Positions 1,708-63,790 of a stretch of DNA of 64,000 nucleotides are shown in pieces. Source of the DNA: Adineta vaga (lineage: Eukaryota > Animalia > Rotifera). How positions within the stretch are numbered: the stretch's first letter is position 1; every line of letters starts with the position of its first letter. The stretch is taken from the NCBI GenBank assembly GCA_021613535.1, contig CP075494.1, positions 1,426,001 to 1,490,000 of the forward strand, given 5' to 3'. Below the pieces are notes generated by a model, which was given only the letters and a program-made list of their open reading frames with translations, was not told where the DNA came from and ran no database searches. The translations under genes and the position numbers were made by a program.

Positions 1708-2096
1708 CAGACATGGGCAAGTCATCGGGTTTTTGACCCAAGTCAAGTCGAGTCGAGTCATAGTCTGTTTCTAAAAATTTCAATTCAAGTCAAGTCAAAT
1801 CATATCTGAAAATCGTCAAGTCGAAGTTAAAATTCAAGTCAAGTCAAGTCATTTGTTGACTTGAAATAAATCGAACCGAATTTAAGTCAAGTGAAGCAGA
1901 TTTTTCGCTAAATTTCATCAATCTCATTTATTTTTGAAAAGATCAATATGGTACTTTCATTCTATATGAAAAGAAGTAAATTTTCAACACGATTATAGGC
2001 AAGAAAATAAACAAATGTGCTAGATAACATAACAAAATAATATAACTAAATTTCACTGTTACATTTCAATAATGTTAACTGTTGAAGAGTATTACG
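1708..2096 (-). mobile_element. Truncated hAT transposon end (TIR, AAGTC subterminal repeats, last codons of transposase)
   Basis: TIR CAGACATGGGCAAGTCA differs by 1 nt from the TIR at 17204. AAGTC repeats lie at 1740-1890. 2046-2096 encodes RNTLQQLTLLKCNSEI*, compared with RKTLEQLTMLKCNSGTA* in the element at 17.5 kb. Confidence 0.85.
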
Positions 2097-2144
2097 AGTG
2101 TGGGTGTGGGTGAAAGAAAGACACACACTCACATCTTCAAGATG
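2096..2144. repeat. Telomere-like palindromic element (TLP)
   Basis: GAGTGTGGGTGTGGGTG-aaagaaaga-CACACACTCACATCTTCAAGATG. Confidence 0.8.
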
Positions 2145-2201
2145 TAACTTACAAAAAGCAATGTATGCAGTAATTAGCCGCTCCCGCAACGAAATCATCG
2201 T

Positions 2202-2264
2202 ATCTTGAGGGTGTGGGTGTGTTCGTCTTTCTTTTACCCACATCCACACCCGCCAAATCTTCAA
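2202..2264. repeat. TLP element
   Basis: ATCTTGAGGGTGTGGGTGTG-ttcgtctttctttta-CCCACATCCACACCC; the core is the reverse complement of the core at 2096. Confidence 0.85.
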
Positions 2265-3153
2265 TAAAAGATGCCTTTTTGCCAGATATGTTGTATTTGT
2301 TTCTCTATTTGCGATAATATATTAATAGACATAAGTTATATATGTTGTTTGAAAAGCATAGTTACCTTTTGTTGCGATTATATGAGGAAATGGAAAAGAA
2401 AAAAACAACGTTGGAAAAAATACATATTAAAATTATTCAAAATTTCATGTGATTAAAAGTTTTTTCCCGAGTAATGATCTATATAAAAAGATATTTTATT
2501 AATTCTCTTTAAAATTTTGCTTGCAAAATAACTTCATTCGCATAGAAACTAGATGAAAGAAAAGTAATAGAATATGAACAAAGCATGAAGACATCAAATA
2601 CTTCAGACAAACATGCAAGAACACGCGCACCTTCTCGTACCAAGAAAATATGTCAATAATGCACATACTTTATAAAAAGAAGAAAAAATCAACGTAAAAT
2701 AGTGATGTATATTACTTACGATACATCTTGAGGGAAGTATACTTAATTTTTGATAGAGTAGATATACGCTACGGGTGTATATTCTCTTTTTTCGATTATG
2801 TATGTCGCATTAATATTGAGTTAAGCAAGTAATGTTAATTCTTTTAACTATATCCTTATTCAAACGTAAGTGAAGATTACCAGATTTGATCATCAATTCG
2901 GATCAAACGATTCTTTACCATGACGATAGCCAACAAAGTCAATTTAGTAATAAATTCAGCGTTTTCTTCTAAGTAAATTTTTTTTATAGTTGGGAAAATC
3001 ATACTAATACGACTAGATAACAAATTCATTGCTAGTTCATTTCAGATTGAGCACAATTAGCATTAAATGACGTTACATGAGAGCAACAATTCAGCCTACA
3101 TACGAAAACTTTTTGATTTTGAAATGACTTAGCCTATTTGATAGAGTATAAAA

Positions 3154-3182
3154 CCATCTTGAAGGTGTGGGTGAGAGTGTGA
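3154..3182. repeat. TLP left arm only
   Basis: CCATCTTGAAGGTGTGGGTGAGAGTGTG; a lone right arm (CACCTCACCCTCAAGAT) lies at 3784-3800. Confidence 0.7.
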
Positions 3183-3869
3183 AAGTCGCTCATTTTCAGC
3201 TTGGTTATTTATCTTTTAAGATAAACACAGTTGCCCCCCAAAAGGACAATGTGACAATCTCTCTGACATGCGCTGTACGCGTGATACGGTTTTTCTCATC
3301 TAATGGATTATCCTTATTTCTGTACATTCTGATGTACTTTGATAGAATATTTTCTTGCGTTCTCTTTTGTAGGGACGAGTATATAAACGCGTGTTTTGTA
3401 TCAGAACGATGCGATTTACGAGGAAGAAATAAATAAAGGCGTAGTTCCATCAGCGCATACATCTCTTCCATCAAAAATCGCCACAAACAATTTTTGCGTG
3501 ATACACACTCATTTCTAAGCAAAGAAAAACGTTGAGTTGTATATGTATCCTAGTTTATTCTTTTACTTGTTTTTTTTCTTTCGTTCTCTTTCGTTTATCA
3601 CAGATACTTCGTTCTTTTTCATCTCTATAATCACATATTTTGTTTTTTTCCTTTCTTTCTCTACGTGTTATCGTTTCATATGTGTCATGTCTAGTAATAT
3701 TTATCCCCAGTCATCCAATAGGTATTTTCCAAAAATTTGTGATCGAGTATCGTATATATAGCGTATAATTTTTCATGAATAAACACCTCACCCTCAAGAT
3801 AATTAGATTCTGCTAATTCGCAAACACAGACACACACGCATATACAATTACTTTTAGAATTACAAAATT

Positions 3870-4403: not shown

Positions 4404-5557
4404 AGATTTTACATCAACACTGACTCTATCACATAATTGCATCAGAACTCTTACTTTCTCATGATATTTATTTCAACAAATTTGTTTTCTGCATATTCTT
4501 TTTGTCAGTTACTTATTCGCTTTTCAATTTTCTCGTATTCTATACATAAAGGCATCAAGGAACAAACAACTGTTATGTCAATGGCGATTAAATGAAAAAG
4601 AAAGATTAAACAGGAATGAACATACTTTGGCTTTTGGAAAAATTTACAACGATCGATTAATTAAAGGTCTTAACATCTCAGTATTGAATGAAAATATAGA
4701 GTAAGGGAAATTAGACTATTCACACCTTGCGTTTTACTAGCAGATTGTAGAATATAAGAAAATATACCTTTGAGTTTCATTTTTTAAAATAGTGAATTTT
4801 ATTGAAGAGAGATAGCGAAAATTTCAAAGCGATTCCTTATGTATAAAAATTTGCTAGGATCCGGACCCGACGAGCTCTATTAGATATAGTTCAGAATCTG
4901 TTACACTATAGAATATGATTGGAATATCCATATTTTTAGGAAAAGGTGCAAGTAGATGAGCGTCTTTTGAAAAAGTTGGTCTAACAATACTGATAATATT
5001 TGATGTTGATACTATTTCGCATACACTACGAAAAGCATTGATTACATCCCCTGTCGTTAAAGCTAGTTGTCCATCGAGAAATTCTTCTCTAATCTAGTTA
5101 TATTATATTATTGAGAGATCACGATTGTTAACAAAAACATTGTATGAACTTGATTAAACCAGGATTTAATAATTAAAATTATTTTGTATGACACGTAGGA
5201 ATTGAATTATCGAAGACTTTCATGAATACCAAATTTCTCTTACATGTTGTATATGTTGTTGAATAAAGAAAACGTAAAAGTATAACGATCAAAACCTCAT
5301 CAATATGTCTATAATATACAATTGATCAAAGTTAAAATAAAAAATATATATTTTCAATTTCGTTAATTATTCGCCCATAGTCTTATTTTTGAAAAGGATC
5401 CTTTTATTTTCAGCTTCTTTTTTGACCAATTAGTGAACTAAGCAAATAATTGATGTTTGCAAGACTCTTTCCTACGAGAAAGAGAAAAAGCTTTCAGTGC
5501 AATCCCTTGGGGGATTAAAAATGTGAAACACGATAGATCTGTTTTTATTGCTAGTAA

Positions 5558-5604
5558 GGATGAGTGTGGGCTATCCTCATCCACGTCTAAACCCTCAAAG
5601 ATGG
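5558..5604. repeat. TLP element (degenerate)
   Basis: GGATGAGTGTGGG...CTCATCCAC...ACCCTCAAAGATGG. Confidence 0.6.
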
Positions 5605-6110
5605 AGTCATGCAGTCATTGAATCAGTCGGTGGTGTTTGTAGGAGATCCTGAGTCTGTCGATTACATCTGTGACGGAGGCAATTTAAGGTATCGGTGACG
5701 TCTGTGGGGGAGGGCAAAGCATTTTTACTCTGTCGGTCATGTCTTTGGGGGGGGGGGGGATTTCTACCCTTAAACACTTCAACACTCTCTTTCAGATCGT
5801 GTTTCACAAAATTATGAAATAACTCGTCATTTTCATCAATATTGCAATAAAAAAAAAGAAAGAATTTCTTGGAATTTTTCATATGATTTTCTATTGAAAT
5901 AAATATCAACTAACTAATTTGAGTTCAAATATAAATGAAGATTTAAAAAAAACCTTAGCATAAAACTAATTCTTCAGGAAAACATAGTTTTAGTTGTACA
6001 CATACTTCTAATTCATATTTCGACATAGATATGAATAGATATGTAATTCATAACTTAAGCAAAGACGAAAATTAATCTATTCCTATTTTCATAGGAGAAC
6101 ATAGAAATGC

Positions 6111-6205
6111 ATGAAGGGTGTGGGTGTGGGTGTCGGTAAGGGTGTGAGTGTAGATGTTAGATAGATGTAGTATCCACACCCACACCCACACTCACACCCT
6201 AGGAT
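6111..6205. repeat. TLP element
   Basis: GAAGGGTGTGGGTGTGGGTG...gttagatagatgtagtat-CCACACCCACACCCACACTCACACCCTAGGAT. Confidence 0.9.
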
Positions 6206-6219
6206 CCGCTTTTTCCCCC

Positions 6220-10803: not shown

Positions 10804-10862
10804 TTGAAATCGAAGAACACTGTTGAAATAAATAAAGAAAGATTGTACTACCTTCTATGAAC

Positions 10863-10915
10863 CCATGAGTGCGGGTATAACTTAAGATTGACACCCTCAC
10901 CCACACCCACTCTAG
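10863..10915. repeat. TLP element (degenerate left arm)
   Basis: CCATGAGTGCGGGT...ACACCCTCACCCACACCCACTCTAGA, 60 bp after the EF-2-like stop. Confidence 0.65.
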
Positions 10916-17203: not shown

Positions 17204-20169
17204 CAGAGATGGGCAAGTCAGACGTTTTCACAAGTCAAGTCAAGTCAAGTCAATTCACAGGGAAACGAAGTCAAGTCAAGTCAAGTCAATAGTCTTTCAA
17301 GTCAAGTCAAGTCAAGTCAAGTCATGCCAAGCGAAAACTATGAGAAAAAATTCTTTCATATATTTTATTTTTGTCCGAAGGCAATGATTTCGAATTTCTT
17401 TGAAAAAGAAAAAAAGAAGTTTACTACCAAATTTTCACAATAATAGGAAACAAACAAATCTGTTCACAAACATCATGATTACATTTGAACAAAAGACAAA
17501 AAAGAACGAATGATACATTAAAATGTATCAAGCAGTACCACTGTTACATTTCAACATGGTGAGTTGTTCAAGAGTCTTGCGTGACATTCGAGCACGATGA
17601 GAACGAAATAAGAATCCACTTTGTGAGAAGACCCTTTCTACTGCAGCAGATGTTGCTGGTACGCATAAATACTTTGTGGCCAATTTGGCCAAAGTTTTGT
17701 ACGAAGTTGATGATGGGGGATTGAGCAGAATCATACTATCATTATTGGCATCATTGATATATTTCGATATTTCTTCTTGAATATAAGTATACGAATACGA
17801 ATCATCTGGTTTTGCTTTTTTACCATTCTTCAGATCATGTTCGATGTTGGTAAATAAACCTTTTCTTTTGTGTATATTTGGAGACGATAATGATGTATCT
17901 GGAGGTTCTTGTTCTTGATGCTGTTTTTTTACCTTCTCATCATTTGAAAGAAGAGATTCAGATTCATGCACCATTATTACACAATGATCAAACACTAGTT
18001 GTTTAATTTTTACACATAATCGTTCTTTTGTTAAATCACCAAGTGATGATTGTGTAATCCATCGAATTTTGAACATTCCACCAAGAAATGGAGAAAAAAG
18101 AAAAATTGGATCTTTATACAAATTGTAGAATTTGTTGTTCGTTTTAAAATCAACATTAATATCAGTAAGACTAACATCCAATTGTTCAAGTAAACCACCA
18201 AATCTTGATAATAATGAACTTAATAATCCTTCACATAATGCTGTAGTATATTGTACATTATTTTTTTCATTCAGTAAATCCAAATAAATGGCTAAAATAC
18301 TTGGTGCAACAATTGAAATAGATGGAGAGTTTTCAGTTTGAGTAGCTGTCGTTGCTTGTGCAAATAATGAAAATAAATCAACAAATTCTTGTAACATTTT
18401 TAAATCACGTGTAGTCAAACACAAATGTGTATACTTTAATTGACCTAAAACATCATTCAATTCGATAGTTGGTATAGTCAGAATCCGTTCTACTGTCATG
18501 AACTGTGAATTCCACCTTGTAATAACAGCACGAGGAATGGACACCTTCATCAAATCTAATTTTTCTGAAAATTTGGTTGATGTATGTGCAAGTTTCGCAA
18601 TGGCAGAAACCTTTTCCAATGCACTCACAACTGATTTGGCCTCTTTCAGACCATCTTTGATAACGAGTTGAATCGTATTGCAAAACAAGGAATTCGAAAG
18701 ATTTCAGTATTTTCCATTAATCGATTTATTGATTCTTGAATAAGATCTTCAGATGCTACATCAGCAGTTGTTGATAAATCTGTTGTCAATGAATTTGTTG
18801 TTGATAAGTGATCAGATGGATATTCATATTCATCACTTAACGCTCCATCATCAGTTGTATCTAAATCATTTTCATCTTCATTGATTTCATCATCATGATT
18901 TTCAACAAAATATTTTTCAAAACCAGGAATAACAATATTTTGAAATGCATTAATATTATTTGCTGCATTATCAGTAACTAAACGAACAACCTTGTTTTTT
19001 ATGCCAAATAAACTAAGGATTTCTTCATATTTTTCAAGTAATAATGACCCAGAATGAGTACCCCATAATGGTACAAAGCACAAAACATAATTTTTAAAAT
19101 TTCCATCAATAATTGTATGAGCTATAAAACAGGTGAACTATATTAAAAACATTTTTCAATAATAATCCTACCGGTTATTGCAAAAAAAGATCTCATTCTT
19201 CGATCAGTCCATACATCAAGTGCCAAAGATAAGAATTTAGCTGTTGAACAAAATGTGATTAAATGATCATGCATCTTATCGTATAAATTAGGAATTGTTT
19301 TTCGAGTTATAGTTCGTCGATTTACAATGGTAAACTTGGAATCGACTTTGTGCATAAAATTAACAAACGCTGGACGTTCTACAATTGATAATGGTAAACC
19401 CATTGTAATAATTAAATCATTGACAATACCCAAAGACAATTCCATTTGTCGTGGATGATTCGAACCATATGATGCACGATTTGGTGAAGAACTTTTTCTC
19501 AGATAATGATTGGTAATTTTGTTGATTTGTGAAGGTGAGTCGATCTTGCTAGATTGACTCAACCAATTTTCATATTCTTCCTTATGATATTGTCGAACAT
19601 GTCGACTAAAATTGGAAGTAACACCTTGCTTGTCTATAACTCTTTTGGGTTTATTGCATAATAAACATTTAGCAGACCATCTTTTTTTGTCAGTTTCAAT
19701 CTGAAGATCCCCAAAGAATTGATCACGAGCAGATTTAAATATTGTTGAACTTGATGCTAGCCTTTGAGAAGTAGTTGTTGGATTAATCGTTGGTATTACT
19801 TCTACTTCAATTTCATCATTTGATAAAGATGTATCAACAGCACTGTTTTGTTCATTCATTAGATTTCGATCGTCGGTACCGAGGAATTGCAATAACAAAG
19901 GTTACACAACGCAAACGTATTACAAAGATCGCTGATAAACAAATCATTGGGATTTTAGTTTACCAATAGAAATTGGGAAAAACTTTTATTGAACAAAATT
20001 GTAGAATATATATTTCCTGATAAATATAATTTATTCTTAACAAAACTCTTATTCTAATTATATTTTCCTTTTACATTTTGATTCTGTAATATGACTTATG
20101 CAGTACAAAAGAAAAGAGTACATAAAAACCTCTTCATATATGTTTTTTGACTTGACTTGCCCATCTCTG
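17204..20169 (-). mobile_element. Near full-length hAT transposon (BED-finger transposase, one frameshift)
   Basis: 17 bp TIRs CAGAGATGGGCAAGTCA / TGACTTGCCCATCTCTG and an AAGTC subterminal array at 17231-17325. The flanking 8-mers do not match. Confidence 0.93.
17528..19859 (-). pseudogene. hAT transposase (ZBED-like), frameshifted
   Basis: BED finger (AKCLLC..TSNFSRHVRQYH), LDVWTD, intron 19122-19171, VTDNAAN, TRWNS, PATSAAVERVFS. A 1-nt deletion at ~18679 breaks CFA[H]TIQL. Confidence 0.9.
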
Positions 20170-20627
20170 GCTGTAATTATTGATAAACTTTTCAAACATT
20201 GTTCATTATCATCACCATCTTGTTTAGAGCAGTTGACATTGAAATTTGATGCACATGTACGTCTTTGACTTATTATCAATGATTTAGTCGTTGATATTCG
20301 AAAAATATTTGATCGTTTCTTAGTACAATCGTTTCAATTTACATTGCCAACAAAATTGAGCATTCCAACAAGAAAATAAAAATACACGAACTACATCTAC
20401 ATTAACGATGAATTTGACTGACTTCGAGCGCCATCTTCTTGTCTTTCATAAATAAATAAATAAATATAAACCTTCTTTAACTAATGCGGAGGTGATGTCG
20501 ATTACCTAGAAACGAAGTTATAGTCGTTGAACACAAATGGAGTAAACATATCTCAACGTATAAATCATACAAAATCGAAATAAGTGTTGTTTATACTTTG
20601 ATCTTTTCTAAAATAGTTGCAGCAATA

Positions 20628-22477: not shown

Positions 22478-22541
22478 GAGGGTGTGGGTGGGTCAAGCTA
22501 TACTCTTCACCCACCCCCACCCCACATCGACACCTTCAAGA
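22478..22541. repeat. TLP element, core GGTCAAGCTATACTCTT
   Basis: GAGGGTGTGGGTG-ggtcaagctatactctt-CACCCACCCCCACCCCAC...CACCTTCAAGA. Confidence 0.9.
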
Positions 22542-23960: not shown

Positions 23961-23997
23961 TTATTCTCTGTAACGTTCTTCAATAGAATGTCATATG

Positions 23998-24046
23998 CTT
24001 GAGGGTGTGGGTGTGAGTGGGTCAAGCTATACTCTTAACCCACACC
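23998..24046. repeat. TLP element, core GGTCAAGCTATACTCTT
   Basis: CTTGAGGGTGTGGGTGTGAGTG-ggtcaagctatactctt-AACCCACACC, the same 17 bp core as the element at 22478. Confidence 0.9.
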
Positions 24047-24117
24047 AAAAACCAGTTCTATGTCATCACTTAATAAAATATAGATATATATAATAATTAT
24101 TCAATAAAATTCATATT

Positions 24118-25762: not shown

Positions 25763-25813
25763 GCGGGGTGGGCGTGGGTGATTAAAGAGAAAACACCGTC
25801 ATCACTCACGCTC
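25763..25813. repeat. TLP element (degenerate)
   Basis: GCGGGGTGGGCGTGGGTG-attaaagagaaaacaccgtca-TCACTCACGCTC. Confidence 0.55.
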
Positions 25814-26429
25814 GGTTTCATACGTTTCGATTTTTAATATAGACGGAAGTGATCAATATATTCCAAATAATACATGCAAGTTGAGAGGAAAAAGAAAGCA
25901 ATAATATATGACAGACATAACAAGATTTTTGTTTCTTTACTATATCGAGAAAAAAGATCTAACTTATATTTGTGATGATGTAGATGAAATGATGATTTTA
26001 TTTTTATGAAATTTCTATAATGAAAACGAAAATGTCTGATATTGTTTCGACAAGTAAATCATAGTCGTGCTGTTAATATTTTCATGCAATTCATGTACTC
26101 TCATATATCACAATTGATCACACATACAGGTAGGTATGTATGTTTCTAAAAATCATATTTGATTGTACCTGTATATTTGTTCTTTGTTTTCTGACAACAC
26201 GTAAAAAATAGTGACTTTCAACTTTCATCATAACTTTCTATATTGAGAGACATAATCGGTGTGAAAATTGGTAAAAGCTAACGTTTTTTGTATATTTTCA
26301 TTCATGCTTCATTATTGCTCATTATTCATTTTCCGTGATAAAGTGTCTTCTTATACTGCTGTTCTTTTCTGTCTCAGGTAACATTGTACATTCATATCAC
26401 TTTTCGTTCTTCATCGTAGTATATTCAAA

Positions 26430-29768: not shown

Positions 29769-29891
29769 GGGTGGTGAGTGTGGGTATGTGAGAGTACGTA
29801 TCTGCTACGCTCATCCACATCCACACTCTTTATAATACATGATTCGAGGGTTTGGGTCAAAAGTGCACAGTCTCATGTACGCCCACACCCT
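29769..29891. repeat. Two adjacent TLP elements
   Basis: GGGTGGTGAGTGTGGGTATGTGAG...CTCATCCACATCCACACTCT (29769-29829) and TTCGAGGGTTTGGGT...GCCCACACCCT (29843-29891). Confidence 0.75.
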
Positions 29892-30257
29892 AGTTTTATT
29901 TAAATACCTTCAAATCAGAGTGAAGAACATTCTGGCTCGAATTCATATGAATTGTTTGACTACATCAAATCCTGAATCACCAAATGGTTATTTATTTTTC
30001 TTCCCGATATGTTATTCAGAATAAATATTGAATATCTTTTGCATTAAGTCTTCGTGAAAAAATTACATTGGATTTTCAAATAAAAAAATGATAGAAATTT
30101 ACAGTGACGATCATTCTATCGTAGAAACTAAAAACGAGCCCGAACGGAGGTAGTTCATTAAAGATATGAGTTTTTTCTGAGAATAGTGAAAGCTGATGAT
30201 CGAATCAGGATTAAGCACTCTTGGTTAATTGACAAAATACATTTAGAGGGAAGCGTT

Positions 30258-32515: not shown

Positions 32516-35500
32516 ATGGCAGCTTCACTTGAAAATTACTTTCGTAATCTAAATATATTCGATTCCGATATAAATACTCCTGGTGAAAGACGTGATCATG
32601 AACATCGTTCAAATCAAATTGCTACTCGAATATTTTTCCTTATTCTTCTAATTATTCTTATCATTGTTGTCTTATTTTTTCTATTATATTCTCAAACAAT
32701 AACTATTACAGTTCATAATCCAAGTAAAGAACAATTTGAAAACTTACCTTACAATGTTTATTGTCCATGTTCTCATATATCGATGTTTTATGAAGAATTT
32801 GTGACCATTGAAGCAAGATTTCATCAAGTTTGTTCAAGTGATTTTGTTTCCAATCGATGGATTCGAACGATTTTTACAGGTTCAAATGCAACATATTTCT
32901 ATGGATTAGACTTTCGTACTTATGGAAGTGCATCCTTTCAAGCATTAGCAAGTTTTTGTCGTCTTTCAAAAGACAATGTATTACAAAATATAGTTTCATT
33001 TAATAAAATGTCATTTATTAGTCCAGAAATTTTATCTCAAACAGAATTTCAATCACAAATAGATGCATCTATCGAACAATTTCAATTATTTGCATCTAAT
33101 GAATTTCAAACTCAATTAAATTTTGTACAAGATATGATAACTCTAAGTAAATTACAAAGTGGCCTTCAAACAAATTATCTTTTTGCTTATTCTGCTTTTG
33201 ATAATAATCAATTTATTGTATACAGAAGTAGTCTATCATATAGGTCAAGATCTACAAATTCTTGTGTTTGTACAACTGATATGAATTGTAAAATATCATC
33301 AAAAATATATAATATCTTTGGAGAAGCTAGACAAATTACTAATGTGAATAATGTCGGTAGTTTAATGGATATTAATGGTTTTATACTTTCTTATTTACTA
33401 GTCAATTCAATTCTTTTTTCAACACTTGAATGTTTTTACAATCAAATATGTTTAAATAAACTTATTTCATATTTTCCTGTAAATGACAAATTTATTGCAA
33501 TGACAATATCAAACAAAAGTCGATTTAATATTAATTCAACAATAAAAATGATTGTTAATCAACTTATGATAGAAGAATGGATTACAAATATTTCATATGA
33601 TAAATATTATACAAAATGTCAACCTAATTTATGTACTTATACAATAAAGAAAAAATTTACCTTCATGTTTATTTTAACAAAACTTATTAGTTTACTTGGA
33701 GGATTAATATTAATTATTGGTTTTATTGTTCGATACTCTGTACGAATTATAAGACGATTGCCAAGAATTGAACCGATTACATGTAAGTAGAATTTGAAGG
33801 TATGGGTGCTCGATAGATATGTAGTATCCACACTCACACCCTAATAATTTTATTTGACTTTTTCAGTATCTCAACGATTGAAAAATATTTTTGAAAAAAT
33901 TTGGTTAAATTTAAATATATTTAAACATAATGGAAGTAATGAACATCAACATAAATATCAACGAATAGCTACTCGATTGTATCTATTTATTCTTCTAATC
34001 ATTTTATTTCTATTTACTTTATATATATTATTAATTGATGAAGTTCATCATATAAATATTTCAAAACCAATTGAATCCGAATATAAACAATTAGAAGAAA
34101 AATATTCTGATAATATCATATGTCCTTGTTCTTCAATTAAAATGAATTATTCAACATTTATTACTATTCAACCATATTATCATCAATTATGTTCAAGTGA
34201 TTTAATTACTCCTGAATGGATTAATTACAATGTTGTTGGTATACAAGGTCTTACTTATTTAAATATTGATTATCGAAGTAATGCTCAATCACATTTTCAA
34301 TTACTTGCAATGTTTTGTCAACAAGCTAAACAAATAGTTAATAGTAGTATTGAAACGTTTCTTCAAACACAATTTGTTTCTTCTAAAATTGATTCTCGAA
34401 ATTTATTTGAATCAAAAATGAAATTATTTATATCAAATTGGAAATCAACAATATTAAAACGATTTTTACGTATTATTAAAACATTTCAAATCATAATTCA
34501 AGGAAATTTATTAATGAATATTGGTTTAAATGTTGATACGACTTCAACAAATTCGAGTTATCGAGAAACGAAAATCCAAATACGTAAATATTCGAATTGT
34601 TCTTGTGCAATATCATCATGTACACAATTAATGGGTATATATAATTTAAATATAACAAATTTAAGATCGAAACTTTTATTTACTATACCAAATTTTTTTA
34701 TTGGTTGTTCTTCTATTGAATCTTTATTAAAATCAACTTTAGAATGTTTTTATAATCAATCATGTATGATTTTAATAAGTAAATATTTAAATACTTCTTT
34801 TAAATCATCTTTTTCTTTTTCTCCTCTAAATCAATCTCTTAATTTACCAAATGAAACAATTGAATTAATTCTTAATCGACTTATGATTGATTCTTGGTTA
34901 ATAAATATTTCATTTTCTTCATATTATCAAATCTGTTCACCAATATCATGTACAATTGAATATATTGGTAAAAATAATCTATTCAATATTATTACATCGA
35001 TTATAAGTATTTTTGGTGGTTTATCTATTGGATTAAAACTTATTATGAAAATTATTCTTCGTTTTATTGAAAAATTAATGAATAAATTTTCTCTTAGAGA
35101 ATTAAAATTCCTTATAAAAAATCTTTTTTTATGTTCGAATGAACATCAAATGATTCATCGATTACATATTTGTCTTATTCTTACAATATTAAATTGTTTA
35201 TTTCTTTTATTTACTTTTCAATCAAAATTAATAACAATACAAATTGATAAACCAACATTTACAACTTATCAATATTTATTAAAATCTTATTCACAATCTC
35301 TTCAATGTTTTTGTTCAAATATATCAATAATATATAATTCATTTCTTATTATTAAACCTCGTTTTCATCAGATATGTTCAAGTGACTTTATTACTAATCG
35401 TTGGATTAATTATCTTTATAATCAAAATGATTTTTTTCTTCTTTCTCAATATTCTCCAACAGCTATTGGTCAATTTCGATTACTTACTTCATTATGTGAA

Positions 35501-38224: not shown

Positions 38225-38321
38225 CATCTTGAGGGTGTGTGACTTTATGAGTGTTGTTGTGGATGAGAAACACATCCACACACACACACACCTCACCCAC
38301 ACCCCACCCACACCCTCAAGA
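38225..38321. repeat. TLP element, both termini intact
   Basis: CATCTTGAGGGTGTGTG...CACCCACACCCCACCCACACCCTCAAGA. Confidence 0.9.
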
Positions 38322-38385
38322 AATGTCTAATATTTGTCTTGGTAATTTCAAAGAAATATTTTTACATTTTGTTACTGGGAACAAT

Positions 38386-39119
38386 TCACCAACATGTTAA
38401 AAGTAATAACCAACAATAAATACAACAAAAATGAATTTCATATATGAAGCTAACTGACTTAGATTTGGATGACACTGAGGTTGTTGTCGTCGTCGTTGTT
38501 GTCGTCGTTGTTGTAGTAGTTGTCGTTGTTGTTGTGGATTTTAATTTAATTGCTAAGACAACAGATAAGATGACACCAATAGAAATGATGATAAATACGA
38601 CAAAGAAACCGATACAACAAAGATGTCGACAGATCAAATTGTAAAATCGTCTTCTGCTTTCTCTTTCTATTGTTATAGTTGAATTTGGAGGGTGTGGGTG
38701 TGGATAGTTATCGTTCGTTCGAGGTCGAAGTATGAGAGTCGATATCTCGTTTGGTACATCCGGAAGAAAGACATTCATTGGAACATGAGAAGTTGATGGA
38801 TTTCTGGATATTTCTGTTGTCTAAAAAAACGTTGCAAAATGTCACAAATCCGCATTAGAATTTGTTTTTCACTCACAATTCTTTGTGAACGTTGAGATTC
38901 TTGTCGATATCTATCAATAAGATCTTTAATAGCTCGATTCGGCCGTAATTCTGGTATTCGTAGTGGAACACGTGTGATAGGACTTGTACCTTGCTGATTA
39001 ATCCATTGTGTAATGGCTGATCGTTCATATGTATGCCCATCTTCAGCTATAACTGGATCATTCATTATATCAAGCGTTAATGGACATTGATATTCTTCTA
39101 TATTTGACGTATCAGTCAT
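38386..39119 (-). CDS. U-box domain type II membrane protein with Thr stalk, probably 3'-truncated
   Basis: YQCPLTLDIMNDPVIAEDGHTYERSAITQWI..SPITR..LRPNRAIKDLI is a U-box. The next exon has a TM helix and poly-Thr. No ectodomain follows. Confidence 0.8.
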
Positions 39120-39513: not shown

Positions 39514-39560
39514 GCGTGTGGGTGGGTGAGAGACGACAAAAAACCCTCACCCTCCATCCC
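39514..39560. repeat. TLP element (degenerate)
   Basis: GCGTGTGGGTGGGTGAGAG...ACCCTCACCCTCCATCCC. Confidence 0.6.
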
Positions 39561-40376
39561 TGCACGACAATGAAAAAAATCTGAAACTAATATTAACATG
39601 ATGACTCTTTTATTCGTATTCATTCTTTCATTTCTTTATCACATTTACGCATCGTGATACTCAAGCACTATAATATATGAGAGATCGCTCTTTCTCATTA
39701 ACAAAACTTGGGAGTCAAAAAAGTGGACTCTGCAGGTCTTTACCTTGAATGTATTAACAAGACAGATTAAATGCTTTTTAGTTATTTTTTTTTCTAAAAG
39801 TAATAACTATCTATTTTTTGACGTTTCGGTAGGCCGTGACACACCTTCATCAGATTTTGTATTTTCGAAATTAGATCGTTTTTCTACAAACACTTATACA
39901 TATTTTTTCTTTTTTAGTATTGTCTGTTTCTTTCTCGTTCTTTTTTTTTCTTTTTTTATAGTTTGATAGTGCGTCGGCAAGACGATGATAGCTAGTTGAA
40001 ATGACTAATTTGTTGTCATTGTCTTTCGACCTATTATCAACTATAGAAAAAAAAACGAAATGAACGAGAAAGAAACATGATATTGACGTCTTCCTATGTA
40101 TGTTTATCAAAGAAATGAAAAGAATATGAAATATTTTGTATACAATGAATCTACATCGTGAACATCCAATTCATTTTAATGCATTTCTAAAGAATCAAAC
40201 GAATCCGTCATTAATCAACAAACCAAAATGATTTTTCAATGCCCATACATCATTCGCAACTTATTCCTTCTTATAAGTTAAAGATGCCATATGATAATAA
40301 AGATCTACAACAAAAATAGAATCAATATTATTTAAAATTATTTTATTGTGCGGATTATTCTTCTCTCGTAGAAGTT

Positions 40377-40450
40377 TTGATGAGGGTGTGGGTGTGGGTG
40401 GATGTGGGTATTACATCTATCTAACACCCAAACCCACACCCTCAAGATGG
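40377..40450. repeat. TLP element
   Basis: TGAGGGTGTGGGTGTGGGTGGATGTGGG-tattacatctatctaa-CACCCAAACCCACACCCTCAAGATGG; the core is the reverse complement of the core at 6111. Confidence 0.92.
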
Positions 40451-41199
40451 ATCACATACTTATGAGCAAAGGTTCTGAGAAAACACGACTTTCTCCTCAA
40501 AGAACTTTACACCACGTTTTAGTATACTGCAGTTTAGTTTTGAACTTCAGTTTGATCTATTCGGACGCTGCATCGTACACTGAGAAAAGGTTTCGGAGAA
40601 TGATAAGCCCTATGAAAACTGTTTTAGTGATACGCCCGTTAGTAGAAAACGTAGAATGAAAGAAATCAGTTTTTATAGGGTTTATAAAGTTAACGAACGG
40701 TTTAAGGGTATATAACTGCTGACATATCCTAAAAAGTTTATCAGTTTGATAAATTCTTTAAGAGGGTTTATTACTCTACGCTCATTTTTATCAATGTACT
40801 CCCTATCAAAAAGCCTCTCCTATGAGTTCGAGTTATCTCTACGGAATTGACATCGATATCTGCCATTTCCAAAAACCGTTTGCTAAAGAAAAATATTCGA
40901 CGCTTCGATCATATATTCAAGGTACTTTCTCATATCGAAAACAGATTTTCTACACAACACAAATGACAACAGTGTGCCGTGAGGTTCATCAAGACAATTA
41001 ATTTTTTCTCTTACTCGCTCTCCTCCATAGGTCATCCGGACAGTGAATTTGTTCTCTTACTCGTTCTGAAATAAACTGATCTATATGACGAAGATATAAA
41101 CCAATTTGCTAATTTCGACTTTTGGTTTTCAGCAATCGATCTAATTTCCAAAATAATGAATAAATTAATATGCTTATTATTAAAATAATTAAATAAATG

Positions 41200-44822: not shown

Positions 44823-45164
44823 TGCGAATAAAATTACAAATTACAGATACACTCTATACTTGAAATGATTGCTTTCATATATACACGATGTACTTGGCTT
44901 TTTCCAACCAACGTAAATTCAACTCGGCGCTTGCTGTTTACATTTACAACCTTTAATAGATTTACTTGATAGAATGACAACGAGAGTAAAAGAATGCAAA
45001 ATGCATCCATTTTTTCTTTCCTTTTCTTCTAGAAAGGATTTTTTCTTTCCTGTGAAAGAGGATATGAGAGTGTGTACTAGCTGTCATTACTAGTTTCGTT
45101 CCTGTTAAGGGTATCCCCTCTTTTTCGACATTTTCTAGAACTCGAAAACGGCAAAGCCGATCGC

Positions 45165-45223
45165 GTGTGAGTGAGGTAGATTCTTACTGTATCTTCACTC
45201 ACACTCACATTCACACCCTCAAG
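45165..45223. repeat. TLP element
   Basis: GTGTGAGTGAGG-tagattcttactgtatctt-CACTCACACTCACATTCACACCCTCAAG. Confidence 0.85.
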
Positions 45224-45724
45224 AATTAAAGTTATGTTCGTTCGCAATAATTGAAAACAAAACCGTAGAGGATTCTTGTAGTTAGATCATCAACTGAACA
45301 TTTAAAAAAATGTCGTCCTCTCTATTGATCAATCCTAGATGTCAATCAAACATTTTAAAAATAGTGAACAAACTCCCCATGCAGTTTTTTATCTGTCAAT
45401 ACTGCTGCCGTGATATGGTTCAAATTTTCAATAGTGCAGATCAAAAACTCTTTGCTTCAAAACGGGGCTCTTCAAATCAGTTGAGAATCTGACCGGCTTT
45501 AGATTTCGACCTGAAAATGTTGAATCCAATGAGCTTCATTCGAAGATGAATATTCAACGAAGACGATGACATATGTGTTTCTTCAGATGTACATTTCTCT
45601 CATTAGTTACAAATTATTCTCTGATCTGCACAAATATTAAATTACAAAACATGAGCTCTATACAAAATTATGAATCTTGTTTTGTTGAATAGCATGGCAT
45701 AAAAACTTACTCTCTCACTATTTT

Positions 45725-45808
45725 CCATCTTGAGGGGTGTGGGTGTGGAGGAGGGTAAGACTCTTCTCTTCACACCCTCACCCACCGGCAACACCTACAC
45801 CACACTCT
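45725..45808. repeat. TLP element
   Basis: CCATCTTGAGGGGTGTGGGTGTGG...CACACCCTCACCCACC..CACCTACACCACACTCT. Confidence 0.85.
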
Positions 45809-45903: not shown

Positions 45904-46024
45904 TAGACATGCACCAAACCCAAACCCAAGCCCAAACCCAAGCCCAAACTCAAACTCAAACTCAAACTCAAACACAATACCCAAACTCACCAAACCCAAA
46001 CAGTTTGGGTTTGGTGCATGTCTA
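45904..46024. mobile_element. 121 bp hAT-type MITE
   Basis: Perfect 22 bp TIRs TAGACATGCACCAAACCCAAAC / GTTTGGGTTTGGTGCATGTCTA, an internal (CCCAAA/CTCAAA)n array, and an 8 bp TSD GTTTCATA / GTTCCATA (7/8 match). Confidence 0.9.
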
Positions 46025-46945
46025 GTTCCATATACACATCGAAAACGAATGGAAATTAATGATAGAAAATATCGAGCATCAGTATTCGAAATGACAAATA
46101 AGAAAAATCATTAATTCTTTGTTTTTTTGTGATAAACAATGTAAAAGATTAAATAGATCTCGATTTGATTTGACTCTTTCTTATTAAATTAATTGATTGA
46201 TATTCTTTTTTCTTTTCGTATTTTAATCTTAATTCTAATAATAATTTTCTATGTTTCATTAGGATGAGGATATGCTTTCTTCTTGGACAAGCTCGTCCAC
46301 ACCCACACATTATTATCGAGTCTTTGTTTTCATGAAAGAGAAAGAAGAAGCAAACAAATGTCGTATATGAATTGGGTATTTTCTATTAGTCTTATGTGGG
46401 GAAAATAGAAGAGAAAAAGAATAACTATAATTGAGAAAGTGGGAAATAACGAACATATCGCTTGTCTATATATATATATATTAGGTGAATTAGATATATT
46501 GGATGTTAACAAACTTGGATCATTACTAAATTACATAGTCCAGTTATATTCTAAAGAGAAAAGATTGTATATTGTAAACGTAGAGTTCGCTTTAACAGAA
46601 TAAACTTGTTTTCATAATTTCAAATTGAAAAGGTATTTAAATATGTTGGAGAGTTTTATGAGATTAATTTCTTCCGTCTTATTCATCGAAAAAAATGTTT
46701 TTCAGAGTGTCTCGCCACTGTAGTTTAGTTTTTTCTTACAAAAACAAAGCTCACAGTGGGTTTTTTCCAATTGATATTTGTTCCTTTTTTTCTTTCTGTT
46801 CTTTGGGTATATAAATGATACAACATTATTGACTCAAATTATTTTTTGCGCCACATTCTACTGATGAATGTCAGGTTTTTTTATACGATGGATATAATTT
46901 TATAAATTGTTCTTTTTTTTAGACTATAACATTCAATTCTTACAT

Positions 46946-47416: not shown

Positions 47417-48130
47417 CTCATTTTACCTTCAAGATGTCAATTAGATAATTGAAGTGTATACGTATTTTTTAAAACTCCTATACGTTGTACGTTGCGGTAT
47501 GGTGAGATGATTTTTATTCTAAATTTAAAATAAATGGCATTAGATCTAGAAATATTCTTCGGAGAATATTCAATTTATATCATATGTCTACTAATCTAGG
47601 AAAACTTACGAATAAGTGGTTAATATGTACCATACCTTAAGAACTTTTAGTTACCTTTGAGACAGAAAAATTAAAAAGAAGGGTGATGGTAGATGACGGT
47701 CGACGTACCAGTAAAAAAAATATATCGTCACCCATTCACACATTTCTGTTCATTTTAATCTTTGCTGGTAACATACGAAGATAAGAAAAGTAGTCATGAA
47801 TAGAAAAACTGACAAGCAATAAGCCATTAAATTAAGATATTATTGCCAAGGATAACTAATACAAGCTAATGTAAATGGACTGACATAGAATGGAAGTTGG
47901 TTTTGTAAGACTTTCTAGTAACTATTTTTTCTATATTTCGACGTAACAGTTTGATTAAACACTCATGAAAAAATTATTACAATGAAGAAAATTTGCTTGA
48001 ATGTTTCTTTATTTTATGATGGATAGTAATTTACTATGAAGCATTTATAATAAACTAATATGATTAAAATATTGAAAACTTCAAGAATCAATAGTCTGTA
48101 AAATTGAAAATAGAAAATGTTGATTCGTTC

Positions 48131-50058: not shown

Positions 50059-50297
50059 ATGGGTATGAGTGTAGTTGTTTCTTACTGTATTTTCATCTAC
50101 ACCTTAATATCCATTAGTTCTGTAAATCAAAACTATGATTTAAAATTGTAGTATCATTGCTAAAAAGTCAAATATACATACGTACATCATGACATGATTT
50201 ACAAGCGGAACAAATTTTGATTGGACAAATGTGTGTGTGTGTATGGCTGAGGAGAATAAAGACATCCTTACTCTCAGAGACCTTCACACCCACACCC
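50059..50297. repeat. Two degenerate TLP elements
   Basis: 50059-50105 (core TTCTTACTGTAT shared with 45165) and 50230-50297 (ends CTTCACACCCACACCC). Confidence 0.6.
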
Positions 50298-50414
50298 GAA
50301 ACGGTTTGCTAACTTATTGAGAAATAACAATCGACAAAAAATAGAATTCAAATTAAATGAAAATCATTCACTATAAAAATAGGTGAAGTTCATTTCCACA
50401 TGAAGAATAAGGAA

Positions 50415-52090: not shown

Positions 52091-52151
52091 AGGTAAGTGT
52101 GGGTAGGTGTTGGTACTGCTAAGAATTGCGCCCTAATTGGTCCCCACCCAC
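52091..52151. repeat. TLP element (degenerate)
   Basis: AGGTAAGTGTGGGTAGGTGT...CCCCACCCAC, 50 bp beyond the stop of 52201-53049. Confidence 0.5.
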
Positions 52152-52200
52152 TTTTGTATATCATACGGTTACTATCATATTGTCAGTGAATTAAAATCTT

Positions 52201-53394: not shown

Positions 53395-53431
53395 AGTGTG
53401 AGGATGTTTTTTCCCACCCTCACGCTCGCAC
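53395..53431. repeat. TLP element (degenerate)
   Basis: AGTGTGAGGATG..CCCACCCTCACGCTCGCAC. Confidence 0.45.
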
Positions 53432-53715: not shown

Positions 53716-53825
53716 TGAGTCCAAAATGGTCGTGCTGAATTCAGAATTTAATTCTCTATCAAATTATGTAGTTCCGAAAAGGGTCATCAAGAGAAAAAAA
53801 ATCGTCACAGTCACACCCTCAAGAT
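53716..53825 (+). repeat. ~110 bp repeat ending in a TLP right arm (copy 1)
   Basis: TGAGTC..ATGGTC.TGCTGAATTCAGAATTTA..TATCAAAT.ATGTAGTT.CGAAAAGGGTCATCAAGAGAA..TCGTCA.AGTCACACCCTCAAGAT; copy 2 is at 61165-61285. Confidence 0.85.
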
Positions 53826-54281
53826 AAGTACTATATATATATATATTCATCGATCGTATAAGTTGTCAATAAAAGATATTCTGAGAATATGTTTAGTTAA
53901 AAGTTAAATTTGAGTTGCTAGGTACCGATGCGTAATGTTACCGATTGTTTCAGAGGTAGATGAAAGTGGTCGACTCTTTCAATAGCATTGTCAATGAGTT
54001 AATGTTTCAACAGTTTGTTTCCGAAATCATTTGGATACCATATAACAACAATAGAACAAACTAGAGAAAAAAACTTGATCAAATGTGCAAGTGAAAATAT
54101 TTTACGTTACTCAAGATGATATCGCTTAACTAAGACAAAAAAAAGATTAAAGATAAGGTTTATATTCACTTTATTTATTGCTAATGAGAGTTTTTAAAAG
54201 ATAGATTAAACATAAGTATGAAACGCATAATGAGAAAAAAAGATAAAAGATTAGAAAAGTGAATAAATATAAGAAAATAAA

Positions 54282-60256: not shown

Positions 60257-60839
60257 CATGATAATAAACATTTTGACTTTGCTTGATAAGATAAATACGA
60301 TGTCTTGAAGATGTAAATGAGGATATCTCTTTCTCATCCATACGCTTCCATTTATTCACTTATTATAAACGGAGTAGAGGATTGAAAGCGAATATATCGA
60401 TTTTTCAATAAACATTACTAATGTATCGATCTCACCTTTGTCCACCTACATTCTCACATAAATATGTTTAAAAACAAAGCTAAACTAAATAAACGAAAAT
60501 GTGAAGGGTTGTCAAAGATACGTATGATAGTTTTATTCATCAGTTAGAAATTTGCATATTGTTTTTGTAAAATCAAACCTCAATGCCACGTTTATGTTAA
60601 ATGAATGAAGATGAATAACTCGAAATGTAAAAAATAAGTCAATTGGTTTTTTTTCTATGATTTGTTAGAAAATATGTAACTCGGAAAAAATGAAGTCATT
60701 ATATAAAAAAAGAAAAATTTTAAATAAAAGAATAAAATATGTCGCAAGATTTATTAACTAAAACTAAGATTCAAATAGAATATTTTATTGATTTACTCTG
60801 TTCATTTTCAAATATTTCAACTGAAATGATTAAAAAGAC

Positions 60840-60905
60840 TCTTGAGGGTGTGGGTAAGAGTAAGGAAAGGATAGATATCAATATCTACACCCACACCCAC
60901 CCCTC
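60840..60905. repeat. TLP element
   Basis: TCTTGAGGGTGTGGGT...gatagatatcaatatcta-CACCCACACCCACCCCTC. Confidence 0.88.
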
Positions 60906-61164
60906 TCGGGGTGATATTTGTAGAGCAATCCAGTGCCAATGAGACCTATTTCATTTATTGGCAAAATTTCATATTGAAAATGCGTCATTGGACTTTTTTC
61001 GAAATACCTTCTAATAAGCCAAAAATCGAGTATAAAACCGTCATAACTTAGTAATAAAGACATGCGGGCATGAATACTTTTGATGTTTTTCATACCTCAT
61101 CGAGATCTACTTACTACCAAAAGATGGGATCTAAACTGATTAAACACCTGAATATGCTCCCTCG

Positions 61165-61285
61165 TGAGTCTAAAAATATGGTCATGCTGAATTCAGAATT
61201 TACTTCTTTATCAAATGATGTAGTTTCGAAAAGGGTCATCAAGAGAAGAAAATTCGTCATAGTCACACACCCACCCTCAAGATGG
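61165..61285 (+). repeat. ~120 bp repeat ending in a TLP right arm (copy 2)
   Basis: Aligns with 53716-53825 and ends CACACACCCACCCTCAAGATGG. Confidence 0.85.
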
Positions 61286-62312
61286 TATTATACACAGAGA
61301 GCAAAGACTTTCGCACTTTCCTATATTTCATTTCATATTATAATAATTTGAATTGGAATGCTTTTTAATGAAAAAGATCTTAACACTGATAAAACTACGT
61401 CTTCATATATTTTTCCTCTCAAAAAGTGCATCACTTCAATATAAAACACACATATATATATATACCTGTCCATTAAAAAGAATGATAGAAAAGATGAATA
61501 TCTATTGATAAGAATGACAGATATCATGTGTAGAGTATATCTTTAAGTGCGAACATTAAATATATGTATTTTTCATTGCCACACTATTATACGCAATTTT
61601 ATTTTTTCTTCGCATTATTTATCTAACATTAAAAAAGAGAAGTGAATACATATTTGCAACGTAAGTGAATGTATTATATCAGTTCGATTGAAATAAACCA
61701 AAAAATTTTAGACAATTTTATTCTTCATATAATTTTTTCTTTGAGAAAGGAGAATAATTTAATTACAATAAATCGAGAGAATTTATATAATAACTAGAAC
61801 TGAATGAGTTTAAATATATCAGATGTGCCAATAATGATGGTAGACGTTGCGTATTTGATCTATGTCTAGACGCATAATTATATTGTCACAGTAATTCTGT
61901 TTCCCTCCTTCTGCATCTGATGATTCTCCCTTTTTATTGAAGATTGACCGGGCGACCGATGTATAAAAAGGATGAAGAAAGAAAAGGCAAGACAGATTGA
62001 ATTTAGAGTGAAAATGAGTTGGGACGTGGAGTTCATCTTGTGTGGAGTAATCTTTAGTAATAAATAAAAGTAAAATAGTAAACCAAGTACTCTGATCTCT
62101 TTATTTATTGGAACGTAACTGAATTACGTTACATTAGATACTCCCCGTCTTAGCTAAATATATAAGAGTTGAACAAAACAAGTATTTTTTGGTTTTATCG
62201 ATAGTTAGAATAGCTCAATTCTCGAAGTTCAATTGTAATTGAACACACACAAAGAAATATAATTTTTTAAATGATTGTCTATATCTTTTTTCAGTTTAAT
62301 ATTATCATCTCA

Positions 62313-63140
62313 ATGTCTACTCAAGGACCAACATATATTGATCATAATGGATATTTAATACCATTTGGTTTTTCAATCGATTTATTAAATTCAGCTTTAG
62401 AATTTCAACCTAAATCAAATACTATTTTCATTTGTTCTTATCCAAAATGTGGTACAACTTGGATGCAAAATATTGTATATTTATTAATGCATGCTGGAGA
62501 ATCATTTCCATCGAATCTTCAAGTTGATAATGTAATGCCACATTTAGAATTGTCGGGAAGTAAATTTTGTGAAAATTTTCCTGTAATTAAAACACATTTA
62601 CCACGAAATTTCTTACATATAAATCCACAAGCGAAATATATTGTTGTAGCACGAAATCCAAAAGATTGTTGTGTCTCTTTTTATCATCATACTCGTGGTT
62701 TCGTTACTTATTACAATTATGCTAATGGCACATTTGATGATTATTTCGAACGTTTTATCAATGGAAAAGTTGATTTTAATGATTATTTCGATCATTTTCA
62801 ATCATGGGAACCATATTTAAATGATTCAAATGTATTTTTCTGTACATATGAACAATTAAAATCTGATACAAAAGAAATCATCAAGAAATTAGCTTTATTT
62901 CTTGGAATAGAAATGGATAAGAATATGTTAGAAAAAGTACTTAACAATTGTTCATTTGCATCAATGAAGAAAGATGGTCAACGTTGGACTGATGAACGTC
63001 CGGATGATATGCCATTATTTATGAGAAAAGGCGAAATTGGCGACTGGCGTAATCATTTTACACAAGAACAGTCTGATCGTATGGACATGAAAATTAAACA
63101 ATATCCTTTAATGAACGAACTTTGGGGAAAATACATGTAG
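62313..63140 (+). CDS. Cytosolic sulfotransferase (Sulfotransfer_1 family)
   Basis: SYPKCGTTW (5'PSB), IKTHLP, RNPKDCCVS (3'PB), FMRKGEIGDWRNHFT. An upstream in-frame ATG is at 62271. Confidence 0.95.
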   Translation: MSTQGPTYIDHNGYLIPFGFSIDLLNSALEFQPKSNTIFICSYPKCGTTWMQNIVYLLMHAGESFPSNLQVDNVMPHLELSGSKFCENFPVIKTHLPRNFLHINPQAKYIVVARNPKDCCVSFYHHTRGFVTYYNYANGTFDDYFERFINGKVDFNDYFDHFQSWEPYLNDSNVFFCTYEQLKSDTKEIIKKLALFLGIEMDKNMLEKVLNNCSFASMKKDGQRWTDERPDDMPLFMRKGEIGDWRNHFTQEQSDRMDMKIKQYPLMNELWGKYM

Positions 63141-63634
63141 TCTTTTACTTATTGTTTTATTTTGTATTTAAAAAACATTCATCGTAGTTCAAATAAAACT
63201 TGTAAGACAATGGTAGACGCTATGGAATGAAAAGGTTATATTCGTGTTCACATCCAGGACATATAACGTCGACATCTAACTAACACGAAGAGATTTTTTC
63301 CATTCTTTAAATTTGTTGTCATAACTGATAAGAGTTCTCTATAAACAGATCGCAAGAAAAATGTTATTGAATAATAAATGCGAAAATTTCGGATTTTATC
63401 TGAAAGTTATGTATATTGCTTTCATAATGATATTAATCAGATAAATATAATGATTTTAGGTGTACTTAAAAAGTGAGTACATTACAGAATCGATCAGTGT
63501 GTACATCCCTCCGTTTACACGATAACTTTCGAAAGAAATGGCAGAGTCATCGAAAAACTTTTATTCTCAAAATCATTGAAAACGTTTATAAATCGACCCA
63601 CTTTTTAACGCTGATTACGAATATAATATCAGTT

Positions 63635-63790
63635 TTGAGGGTGTGGGTGTGAAAGAAGAACAGATACACCTACACCCTAAAGATTTTCGTAATCATATGA
63701 ACTAGTACTGCTACTTTAACCGTCTGAAGAGTACCTTAGCAAGGGCGAAATCATGATCACGGCAGCTATACTCACCCATCCACCCTCAAG
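63635..63790. repeat. TLP element plus a second right-half element
   Basis: TTGAGGGTGTGGGTGTG-aaagaagaacagata-CACCTACACCCTAAAGA (63635-63683) and AGCTATACT-CACCCATCCACCCTCAAG (63764-63790). Confidence 0.85.

Follow-up and report, generated by a model that had tools for sequence, protein, structure and literature searches.

Bdelloid rotifers withstand massive chromosome breakage, and foreign genes and rearrangements abound in their subtelomeres; we know of no account of how the pieces of these regions are joined to each other. Here we describe a recurrent unit, consisting of two short telomeric tracts set face to face around a small loop, in a 64-kb subtelomeric stretch of chromosome 5 of the bdelloid Adineta vaga (G000:C5:1426001-1490000; G+C 30.6%; assembly of 100.8 Mb in six contigs), hereafter the window. 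It is a real and abundant feature, best read as a new, large-scale variant of break-site telomeric insertion.

The closest described systems are the short interstitial telomeric sequences (ITSs) of vertebrates, including the TERC-ITSs (PMC8537989, PMC7215372), which resemble the A. vaga units in their short internal tracts, lack of target-site duplications (TSDs) and microhomology at the break. In TERC-ITSs, the sequence adjoining the repeats is copied from RNA beside the telomerase template; such neighbors occur on either side of the repeats, and at the rare head-to-head pairs (3 of 41 loci) the authors propose that another telomerase had worked on the opposite end (PMC8537989). In A. vaga, the telomeric repeat is TGTGGG (PMC8494291), telomeric repeats have been observed at deletion breakpoints (PMC13564844), and bdelloid subtelomeres have long been known to contain short telomeric stretches (PMC2861651, PMC7943196, PMC8494291). 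As at break-site ITSs, the units described here have tracts of the species hexamer, no TSD, and microhomology (38318, with a deletion-like difference at 38690). They differ from TERC-ITSs in that the head-to-head arrangement is the rule (613 to 7), in their number (about a thousand 18-mer matches per 100 Mb), in a recurring 3' flank and 5' leader, in that most joints border non-contiguous DNA instead of being plain insertions, and in that the template RNA is one that we infer.

Several other systems share individual aspects. Chromosome healing, which generates neotelomeres, likewise adds repeats directly to broken ends (here, to a 93-bp gene fragment at 29769), but produces a terminal array of one orientation, whereas here two capped ends would have been rejoined internally. 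Fusion ITSs show the same head-to-head G-then-C order, but are few, long and derived from ancestral ends, in contrast to the short, gene-spaced units with a conserved central leader seen here; nor are these rare, as ~30 occur in the 64-kb window and the 18-mer has 985 matches genome-wide. Programmed fragmentation in ciliates (Euplotes, Tetrahymena) adds telomeres beside a conserved breakage sequence, and is comparable in its short conserved motif by the repeat start and its gene-sized fragments; however, the motif here directly adjoins the repeats and is variably truncated, and it is in the germline genome that the fragments would be rejoined. Integron attC sites and bacterial repetitive extragenic palindromic (REP) elements are also intergenic imperfect palindromes with conserved outer parts and variable centers, but the A. 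vaga units have telomeric-repeat arms, no crossover point and, in the window, no integrase or RAYT-type enzyme. In the literature that we searched, the head-to-head form, the flank, the leaders and the coincidence with segment borders are undescribed, although Gladyshev and Arkhipova 2007 and the Terminon papers might describe them.

Architecture and abundance of the units

The window contains 17 complete units and some 15 others that are partial or decayed. An earlier examination of these letters without database searches (the sequence-only reading) had noticed a recurring arm-core-arm palindrome; that structure is real, and at least a part of it is found at every position listed then, in some cases as the flank only or in decayed form. 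The 20-mer arm consensus offered with it is an idealization, because the full arm never occurs exactly in the window (exact copies 0; 7 copies with at most three mismatches versus 0 in shuffles), but the arms are indeed telomere-like, being (TGTGGG)n with TGAGGG and TGGG variants. A search for the 11-mer GGGTGTGGGTG with up to two mismatches, counting clusters per strand, recovered 22 on the G-strand and 26 on the C-strand of the window, against 0-3 per strand in shuffles. Pairs of clusters within 100 nt of each other run G-then-C in 17 cases and C-then-G in one, and the same asymmetry holds for the whole genome, where exact 11-mer pairs at most 60 nt apart show the G-then-C order 613 times and the reverse 7 times. 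An 18-mer composed of flank and arm matches the genome 985 times with at most one mismatch, while the reversed 18-mer, used as a control, has 0 matches. On contig 1 these matches crowd into 0-0.7 Mb and 12-17.6 Mb. The units are concentrated in subtelomeres, with roughly one per 2-2.5 kb in the subtelomeric DNA sampled.

The anatomy of the unit was resolved in 320 kb, made up of the window, twenty samples of 10 kb each from contig 1, and twelve paralogous loci. It consists of an outer flank, a G-rich telomeric tract, a loop of 10-17 nt, a C-rich tract and a mirrored flank. The outer flank is a suffix, of varying length, of CCATCTTGA, such that its versions are nested: among 179 arms, 54 carry TTGA (1.1 expected), 27 carry ATCTTGA and 9 carry the entire 9-mer. 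Each added base is retained at 74-88% given the inner ones (marginal 33-46%), and conservation per position drops outward. The two sides of a unit behave independently. In 56 complete units the lengths of the left and right flanks are uncorrelated (r = -0.08), and both reach at least 5 nt in four of these units, for which independence predicts 4.0; arm complementarity within a unit (0.832) equals that across units (0.828 +/- 0.008), and arm lengths, which span ~10 to >100 nt, are weakly correlated within a unit (r = 0.24). Since the flanks are uncorrelated and the arms no better matched than across units, the unit is not inherited as a palindrome; it is two independent telomeric tracts in a face-to-face arrangement. 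The loop opens with a leader that abuts the G-tract in a constant phase and belongs to one of several families (TTAGATAGATGTAGTA, TTAAGAGTATAGTCTGAC, GAAGAAGATATAC, AAAGAGAAGAC, AAGATACAGTAAGA). Copies of the leader are frequently shortened, and between leader and C-tract families A and B usually have a variable spacer.

Comparable units are found outside the A. vaga assembly. When public metagenome contigs were scanned for exact copies of the 18-mer, at least 120 stretches matched; among the matches listed, 81 are AT-rich, many of them from a few metagenome projects (common contig-name prefixes), and the others are G+C-rich chance matches. The AT-rich contigs are taken here as those of other bdelloids, their origin being unestablished. 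Among the AT-rich matches listed, the G-then-C order again prevails (54 versus 4), the flank extends to AACTATCTTGA, the arms may pass 100 nt, and the loop GGGT-AAAGAGAAGA-CCC is repeated at many loci, with one leader shared with A. vaga. One metagenome contig (L041, ~745-975) has arms of ~100 and ~150 nt, mainly of TGAGGG, around the same short central loop, and hence head-to-head tracts can reach telomere size in some environmental contigs.

Units at the borders of paralogous segments

The units of the window are listed below by window position; no strand is assigned to any of them. L012, L022 and L026 are paralogous loci, HSP stands for a high-scoring segment pair of the own-genome BLAST search, ORF for open reading frame, and GPCR for G-protein-coupled receptor.

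2096..2145: complete unit of G-tract, leader AAAGAAAGAC, decayed C-tract and flank TTCAAGATG; a 97%-identical paralog segment (1794-2095) stops exactly at its first base
2200..2252: complete unit whose left flank is TATCTTGA; family C' leader read from the C-tract side
2724..2735: weak flank-only motif CATCTTGAGGG
3154..3190: half unit of full flank CCATCTTGA, G-tract and leader start, without C-tract
3784..3803: half unit of C-tract and flank TCAAGATAA, 67 bp before an ATG
5558..5608: decayed complete unit, flanked as no other by paralog homology left and right (HSPs 5483-5549 and 5655-5811 both match one paralogous locus); another paralog aligns straight across
6111..6200: complete unit with long arms, leader family A; DNA fold -26.3 kcal/mol, z -5.4
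10863..10912: decayed unit ~60 bp beyond the end of a plus-strand ORF
22478..22540: complete unit, leader family B; fold computed
23998..24047: complete unit with a family B leader, between convergent GPCR-like and NHL genes that are 160 bp apart
25763..25815: decayed unit
29769..29830: complete unit whose G-tract caps a 93-bp truncated kinase-like gene fragment; 94% homology to L026 ends at 29768
29843..29892: complete unit 13 bp from unit 29769
33794..33843: complete unit, leader family A, in a GT..AG intron of a two-exon gene with exons collinear in paralogs
38225..38325: complete unit where the U-box gene unit has its 3' border; 82-87% homology to L022 begins at 38318, inside the right flank; fold computed
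38690..38706: lone G-tract in the U-box gene ORF, where paralog L022 has ~220 extra bp
39514..39560: complete unit between divergent genes, with neither flank
40377..40452: complete unit with a family A leader, the right flank full (TCAAGATGG) and the left one poor; an 81% paralog HSP (40057-40380) stops at its start; fold computed
45163..45225: complete unit, its arms decayed; leader family D
45725..45805: complete unit; L012 homology crosses the flank and ends at the first base of the G-tract
46261..46312: decayed unit
47425..47438: flank-only joint (ACC + TTCAAGATG) 9 bp after the UBC gene stop; an 84% paralog HSP ends at 47424
47678..47745: decayed unit
50059..50125: decayed unit, leader family D as read by eye (CTTACTGTAT in common with 45163) and not as assigned by the leader screen
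50230..50298: unit with decayed G-tract and intact C-tract
52091..52170: decayed unit ~30 bp after a gene stop
53395..53430: decayed unit; an 87% paralog HSP begins at 53429
53806..53826: half unit of C-tract and flank, adjoining a conserved 95-bp exon-like segment
56059..56150: complete unit with full left flank, without right flank, leader family C; fold computed
60303..60365: decayed unit 47 bp after a gene stop
60840..60905: complete unit with a 31-nt loop, a leader start being possible on both sides
61263..61288: half unit of C-tract and full flank, arranged like 53806, of which it is a paralogous copy
63630..63685: complete unit, leader family C; fold computed
63764..63792: half unit of C-tract and partial flank

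The own-genome search, with 53 kb of the window as query and paralogous pieces at ~75% identity or above, gave scattered paralogs of single gene-sized pieces and no collinear homeolog. Paralogy ends within 10 bp of a unit edge in 8 of 35 cases, against an expectation of 0.76 for uniformly placed ends (P = 7e-7) and 1.7 for ends in non-ORF DNA (P = 3e-4). Three junctions can be read at base resolution. At 29769, a 93-bp, 94%-identical 3' piece of a kinase-like gene halts exactly at the G-tract, without a flank, the gene continuing in L026; at 45725, 85% homology to the aligned L012 spans the flank and ends at the first G of the tract; and at 38318, a native ...TTTCTT end is followed by GA and the repeats, in agreement with the priming by a few bases of microhomology that the model below predicts. 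Further, the paralogs L003 and L017 on contig 1 agree in the left DNA, the G-tract and the loop and for another 12 nt into the C-tract, and then diverge completely; existing units are therefore reused as breakpoints. These sequence comparisons support the view that unrelated DNA segments meet at the units. At 33794, the corresponding intron of the paralog is without tracts, but at 66% identity it is too diverged to separate insertion from decay, and an all-against-all BLAST of the sampled sequences gave too few pairs for another breakpoint test.

A small non-autonomous hairpin, such as a miniature inverted-repeat transposable element (MITE), a foldback element or a retro-copied hairpin RNA, could also generate this picture if it were copied whole and inserted at breaks or target sites, with later ectopic recombination providing the breakpoints. 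Consistent with such an element, loops occur in multi-copy families without homology of the flanking DNA, the 18-mer has about a thousand matches genome-wide, many environmental copies have precise loop junctions, single strands of six units form stable folds (z = -3.6 to -6.7), and L003 and L017 show a unit inherited through duplication. We nevertheless consider it unlikely, given that the outermost bases are the least conserved and the two flanks independent, that the arms are unmirrored and unequal (~10 to >100 nt), that a gene fragment ends at a G-tract without any flank (29769), and that no near-identical full copies were seen. TSDs, which the sequence-only reading had associated with ordinary MITEs, are absent from all 56 complete units, where direct repeats of 2-3 nt occur in 2 against ~5 by chance.

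The same borders bear on a dedicated, integron-like recombination system moving gene cassettes, which was the proposal of the sequence-only reading. In its favor, gene-sized segments are bordered by units, paralogous gene units end there, and intervals with one gene are in excess; the excess is modest (15 of 30 intervals versus 9.1 +/- 2.3 at random; P ~0.009), with crude ORF-based gene calls and a null of random placement in non-ORF DNA, a contrast that is inflated by the unit-free transposable element (TE) block. Neighboring genes are in mixed orientation by their ORF strands, as had been noted, and the U-box unit was duplicated along with a promoter-like region, whereas integron cassettes are promoterless and share one orientation. 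Moreover, the arms are telomeric and of free length, the flanks are randomly truncated, no conserved crossover core is present, and units occur in an intron and within ORFs. No integrase-type enzyme is encoded in the window, to which the screen was confined, and no dedicated recombinase near the units; the window's only mobile-element enzyme is a hAT transposase, unrelated to the units, which qualifies the earlier statement that no recombinase is present. With the enzyme, the crossover core and the cassette orientation all lacking, the analogy with integrons is not supported, and we regard such a system as very improbable. What survives of the joining-site idea is that the units mark joints between unrelated segments where paralogous gene-sized pieces end; as such, repair scars and breakage hotspots fit better than sites of site-specific recombination.

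Probable separate extension and joining of broken ends

We favor the explanation that the units are head-to-head joints of DNA ends that had been separately extended with repeats, and consider it probable. The G-then-C order, at 613 to 7 in the genome and 54 to 4 in the environmental matches, is the only one that two 3'-extended ends can give. Separate 3' extension of two free ends followed by joining is also the only simple way to account at once for this nearly invariable order, the independent arms, the independently truncated flanks, the absence of target duplication and the unrelated DNA on the two sides. The enzyme, the RNA source of the flank and leader, and the order of the steps are inferred. 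In outline, a double-strand break, common in desiccation-prone bdelloids, would expose 3' ends, each of which a reverse transcriptase, most simply telomerase, would pair by a few bases with an RNA 3' of its template. The template-adjacent RNA would read approximately 5'-CCC-UCAAGAUGG-3', and copying would yield a suffix of CCATCTTGA, differing in length from end to end, and then (GGGTGT)n. At one end, synthesis would sometimes run through beyond the template into a 5' leader of 10-17 nt, giving a non-telomeric tail closed to further extension or capping; ligation of this leader-tailed end to another repeat-tipped end would then produce the order G-tract, leader, C-tract. Internal tracts so formed may later serve as new breakage sites. 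The nested flank suffixes fit priming at varied points on the RNA 3' of the telomeric template, and the fixed-phase, prefix-cut leaders fit run-through into the RNA 5' of it. Leaders would lie at the center of the joint because the run-through tail stops extension and leaves the end uncapped, and joints would border gene-sized segments because ends of different breaks, or of copied fragments, can join.

A candidate for the enzyme is encoded in the genome: a Telomerase_RBD match at G000:C2:6094386-6094754 (83.5 bits, E 1e-21) with one internal stop, possibly an intron. One survey reported TERT as absent from A. vaga (PMC5405514), and this match would bear on that published claim of a telomerase-less A. 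vaga.

Several observations weigh against separate extension and joining. Five of the eight border cases (2095, 5549, 40380, 47424, 53429; paralogous loci C5:3574797, C5:1014718-1015328, C3:17443838, C1:15972647 and C3:15980822) are placed by BLAST coordinates alone, and at 45725 the flank looks native and not templated, 7 of its 11 positions being homologous in the paralog. No empty site was seen, the homology being one-sided at eight borders and two-sided only at 5558. Nor was a newly formed joint seen: contigs from the 2013 and 2022 DNA runs, listed over units 45163, 45725, 50059 and 50230, agree with the assembly at these units, with a 1-bp variant at 45734 as the sole deviation. The precise, repeated GGGT-AAAGAGAAGA-CCC junctions of the environmental contigs are equally compatible with a whole hairpin copied as one. 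The leader families, of which there are at least 4-5, need several template RNAs or one changing over time; the vertebrate telomerase RNA model of Rfam has no match in the genome, and the literature searched records no telomerase RNA for bdelloids.

If the joints are scars of such capping and ligation, they constitute a genome-wide fossil record of about a thousand or more events by the 18-mer count, mark the points where gene-sized segments were pasted, and predict the sequence around the template of the bdelloid telomerase RNA. More tentatively, capping and joining could be a routine bdelloid route by which every free end is primed on an RNA of the form leader-template-UCAAGAUGG and then stitched head to head, with subtelomeres as the resulting patchworks; we see this generalization as a possibility that is more doubtful than the head-to-head joining of extended ends itself. 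Were it true, it would cover copied gene fragments and possibly foreign DNA, the flank and leaders would spell the bdelloid telomerase RNA or a Penelope-type template RNA, and it would supply a concrete mechanism for the dispersal of gene families and the integration of horizontally acquired genes.

Other origins of the repeats were considered and set aside. Hairpin-capped chromosome ends or sister fusion predict long inverted flanks, none of which were seen, and independent chance scars without templating are ruled out by the leader families. The 3' ends of Athena/Terminon elements, which are endonuclease-less Penelope-like elements, have reverse-complement telomeric repeats beside a hammerhead ribozyme and an RT-bearing element. 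Here, a scan of 319 kb of subtelomeric DNA (the window and 255 kb of other loci) with Rfam found no hammerhead and no family at all, and the ORFs tested beside units lack a reverse transcriptase; the idea of a hammerhead or Athena origin is unsupported because Rfam returned no family. The flank is associated with long perfect arrays at ~13 loci, all internal and none at chromosome tips, but the design of this search biased its outcome, and we draw no evidence from it.

Genes and other elements near the units

Only 1 of 31 units lies inside an ORF (17 expected), and units are often less than 100 bp from stop codons or ahead of start codons, their position and orientation relative to genes not being fixed. 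This intergenic placement is what would be expected of cis-regulatory or chromatin elements under selection, e.g., bidirectional terminators, insulators, or sites for telomere-repeat factors comparable to Rap1 sites or plant telo-boxes, and it is in keeping with such a role that the flank and one leader recur in the environmental contigs of unestablished origin. We regard it as very improbable, in view of the variable placement relative to genes, the many halves and decayed copies, the nested truncation of the flanks and the abutment of units on truncated gene fragments; besides, in a compact genome any intergenic element comes to lie near gene ends. Within the flank, CCATCTTG resembles what we take to be a YY1-type core, which is a lead only. 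A start codon with a Kozak context in the flank (CAAGATGG) was likewise considered and dropped, as ORFs follow it only in some cases.

The gene labels given earlier are confirmed by Pfam for U-box, NHL, kelch, UBC, FG-GAP, sulfotransferase, TPR and coiled-coil proteins. They do not amount to a defense-gene set as had been suggested: the genes belong to ordinary expanded metazoan families (GPCR, kelch, NHL, TPR, U-box). The GPCR-like gene at 22809-23957 was examined as a possible foreign gene and rejected as such, its closest clusters being rotifer GPCRs. The stretch of 10.9-22.4 kb is free of units, as claimed, and this TE block contains the hAT transposase (17531-19901, minus strand), with a BED zinc finger and a hAT dimerization domain; the ORFs beside it at 20496-22393 have no Pfam match.

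Within the U-box ORF, a telomeric tract at 38683-38706 is located exactly where L022 has ~220 further bases, and looks like a deletion patched with repeats within the gene. Between the half units at 3154 and 3784, a segment of 236-248 bp (3243-3490) that overlaps the ORF labeled PPPDE has >30 copies at 95-98% identity across all chromosomes, which suggests a young high-copy repeat. The joint at 47425 is spanned by one contig from a run guessed to be of RNA. A second palindrome, of a different telomere-like repeat, is found at 45904-46024, where a perfect 22-nt inverted repeat surrounds ~77 nt of CCCAAA, CCCAAG and CTCAAA hexamers, and the contigs of public runs break there. Finally, a conserved exon-like segment of ~95 bp with ~20 copies in the genome occurs twice in the window (53730-53826 and 61165-61288); both copies pass straight into the C-tract and flank and then diverge, and in the ORF at 61058-61348 the telomeric tract is translated as ...THPPSRW...

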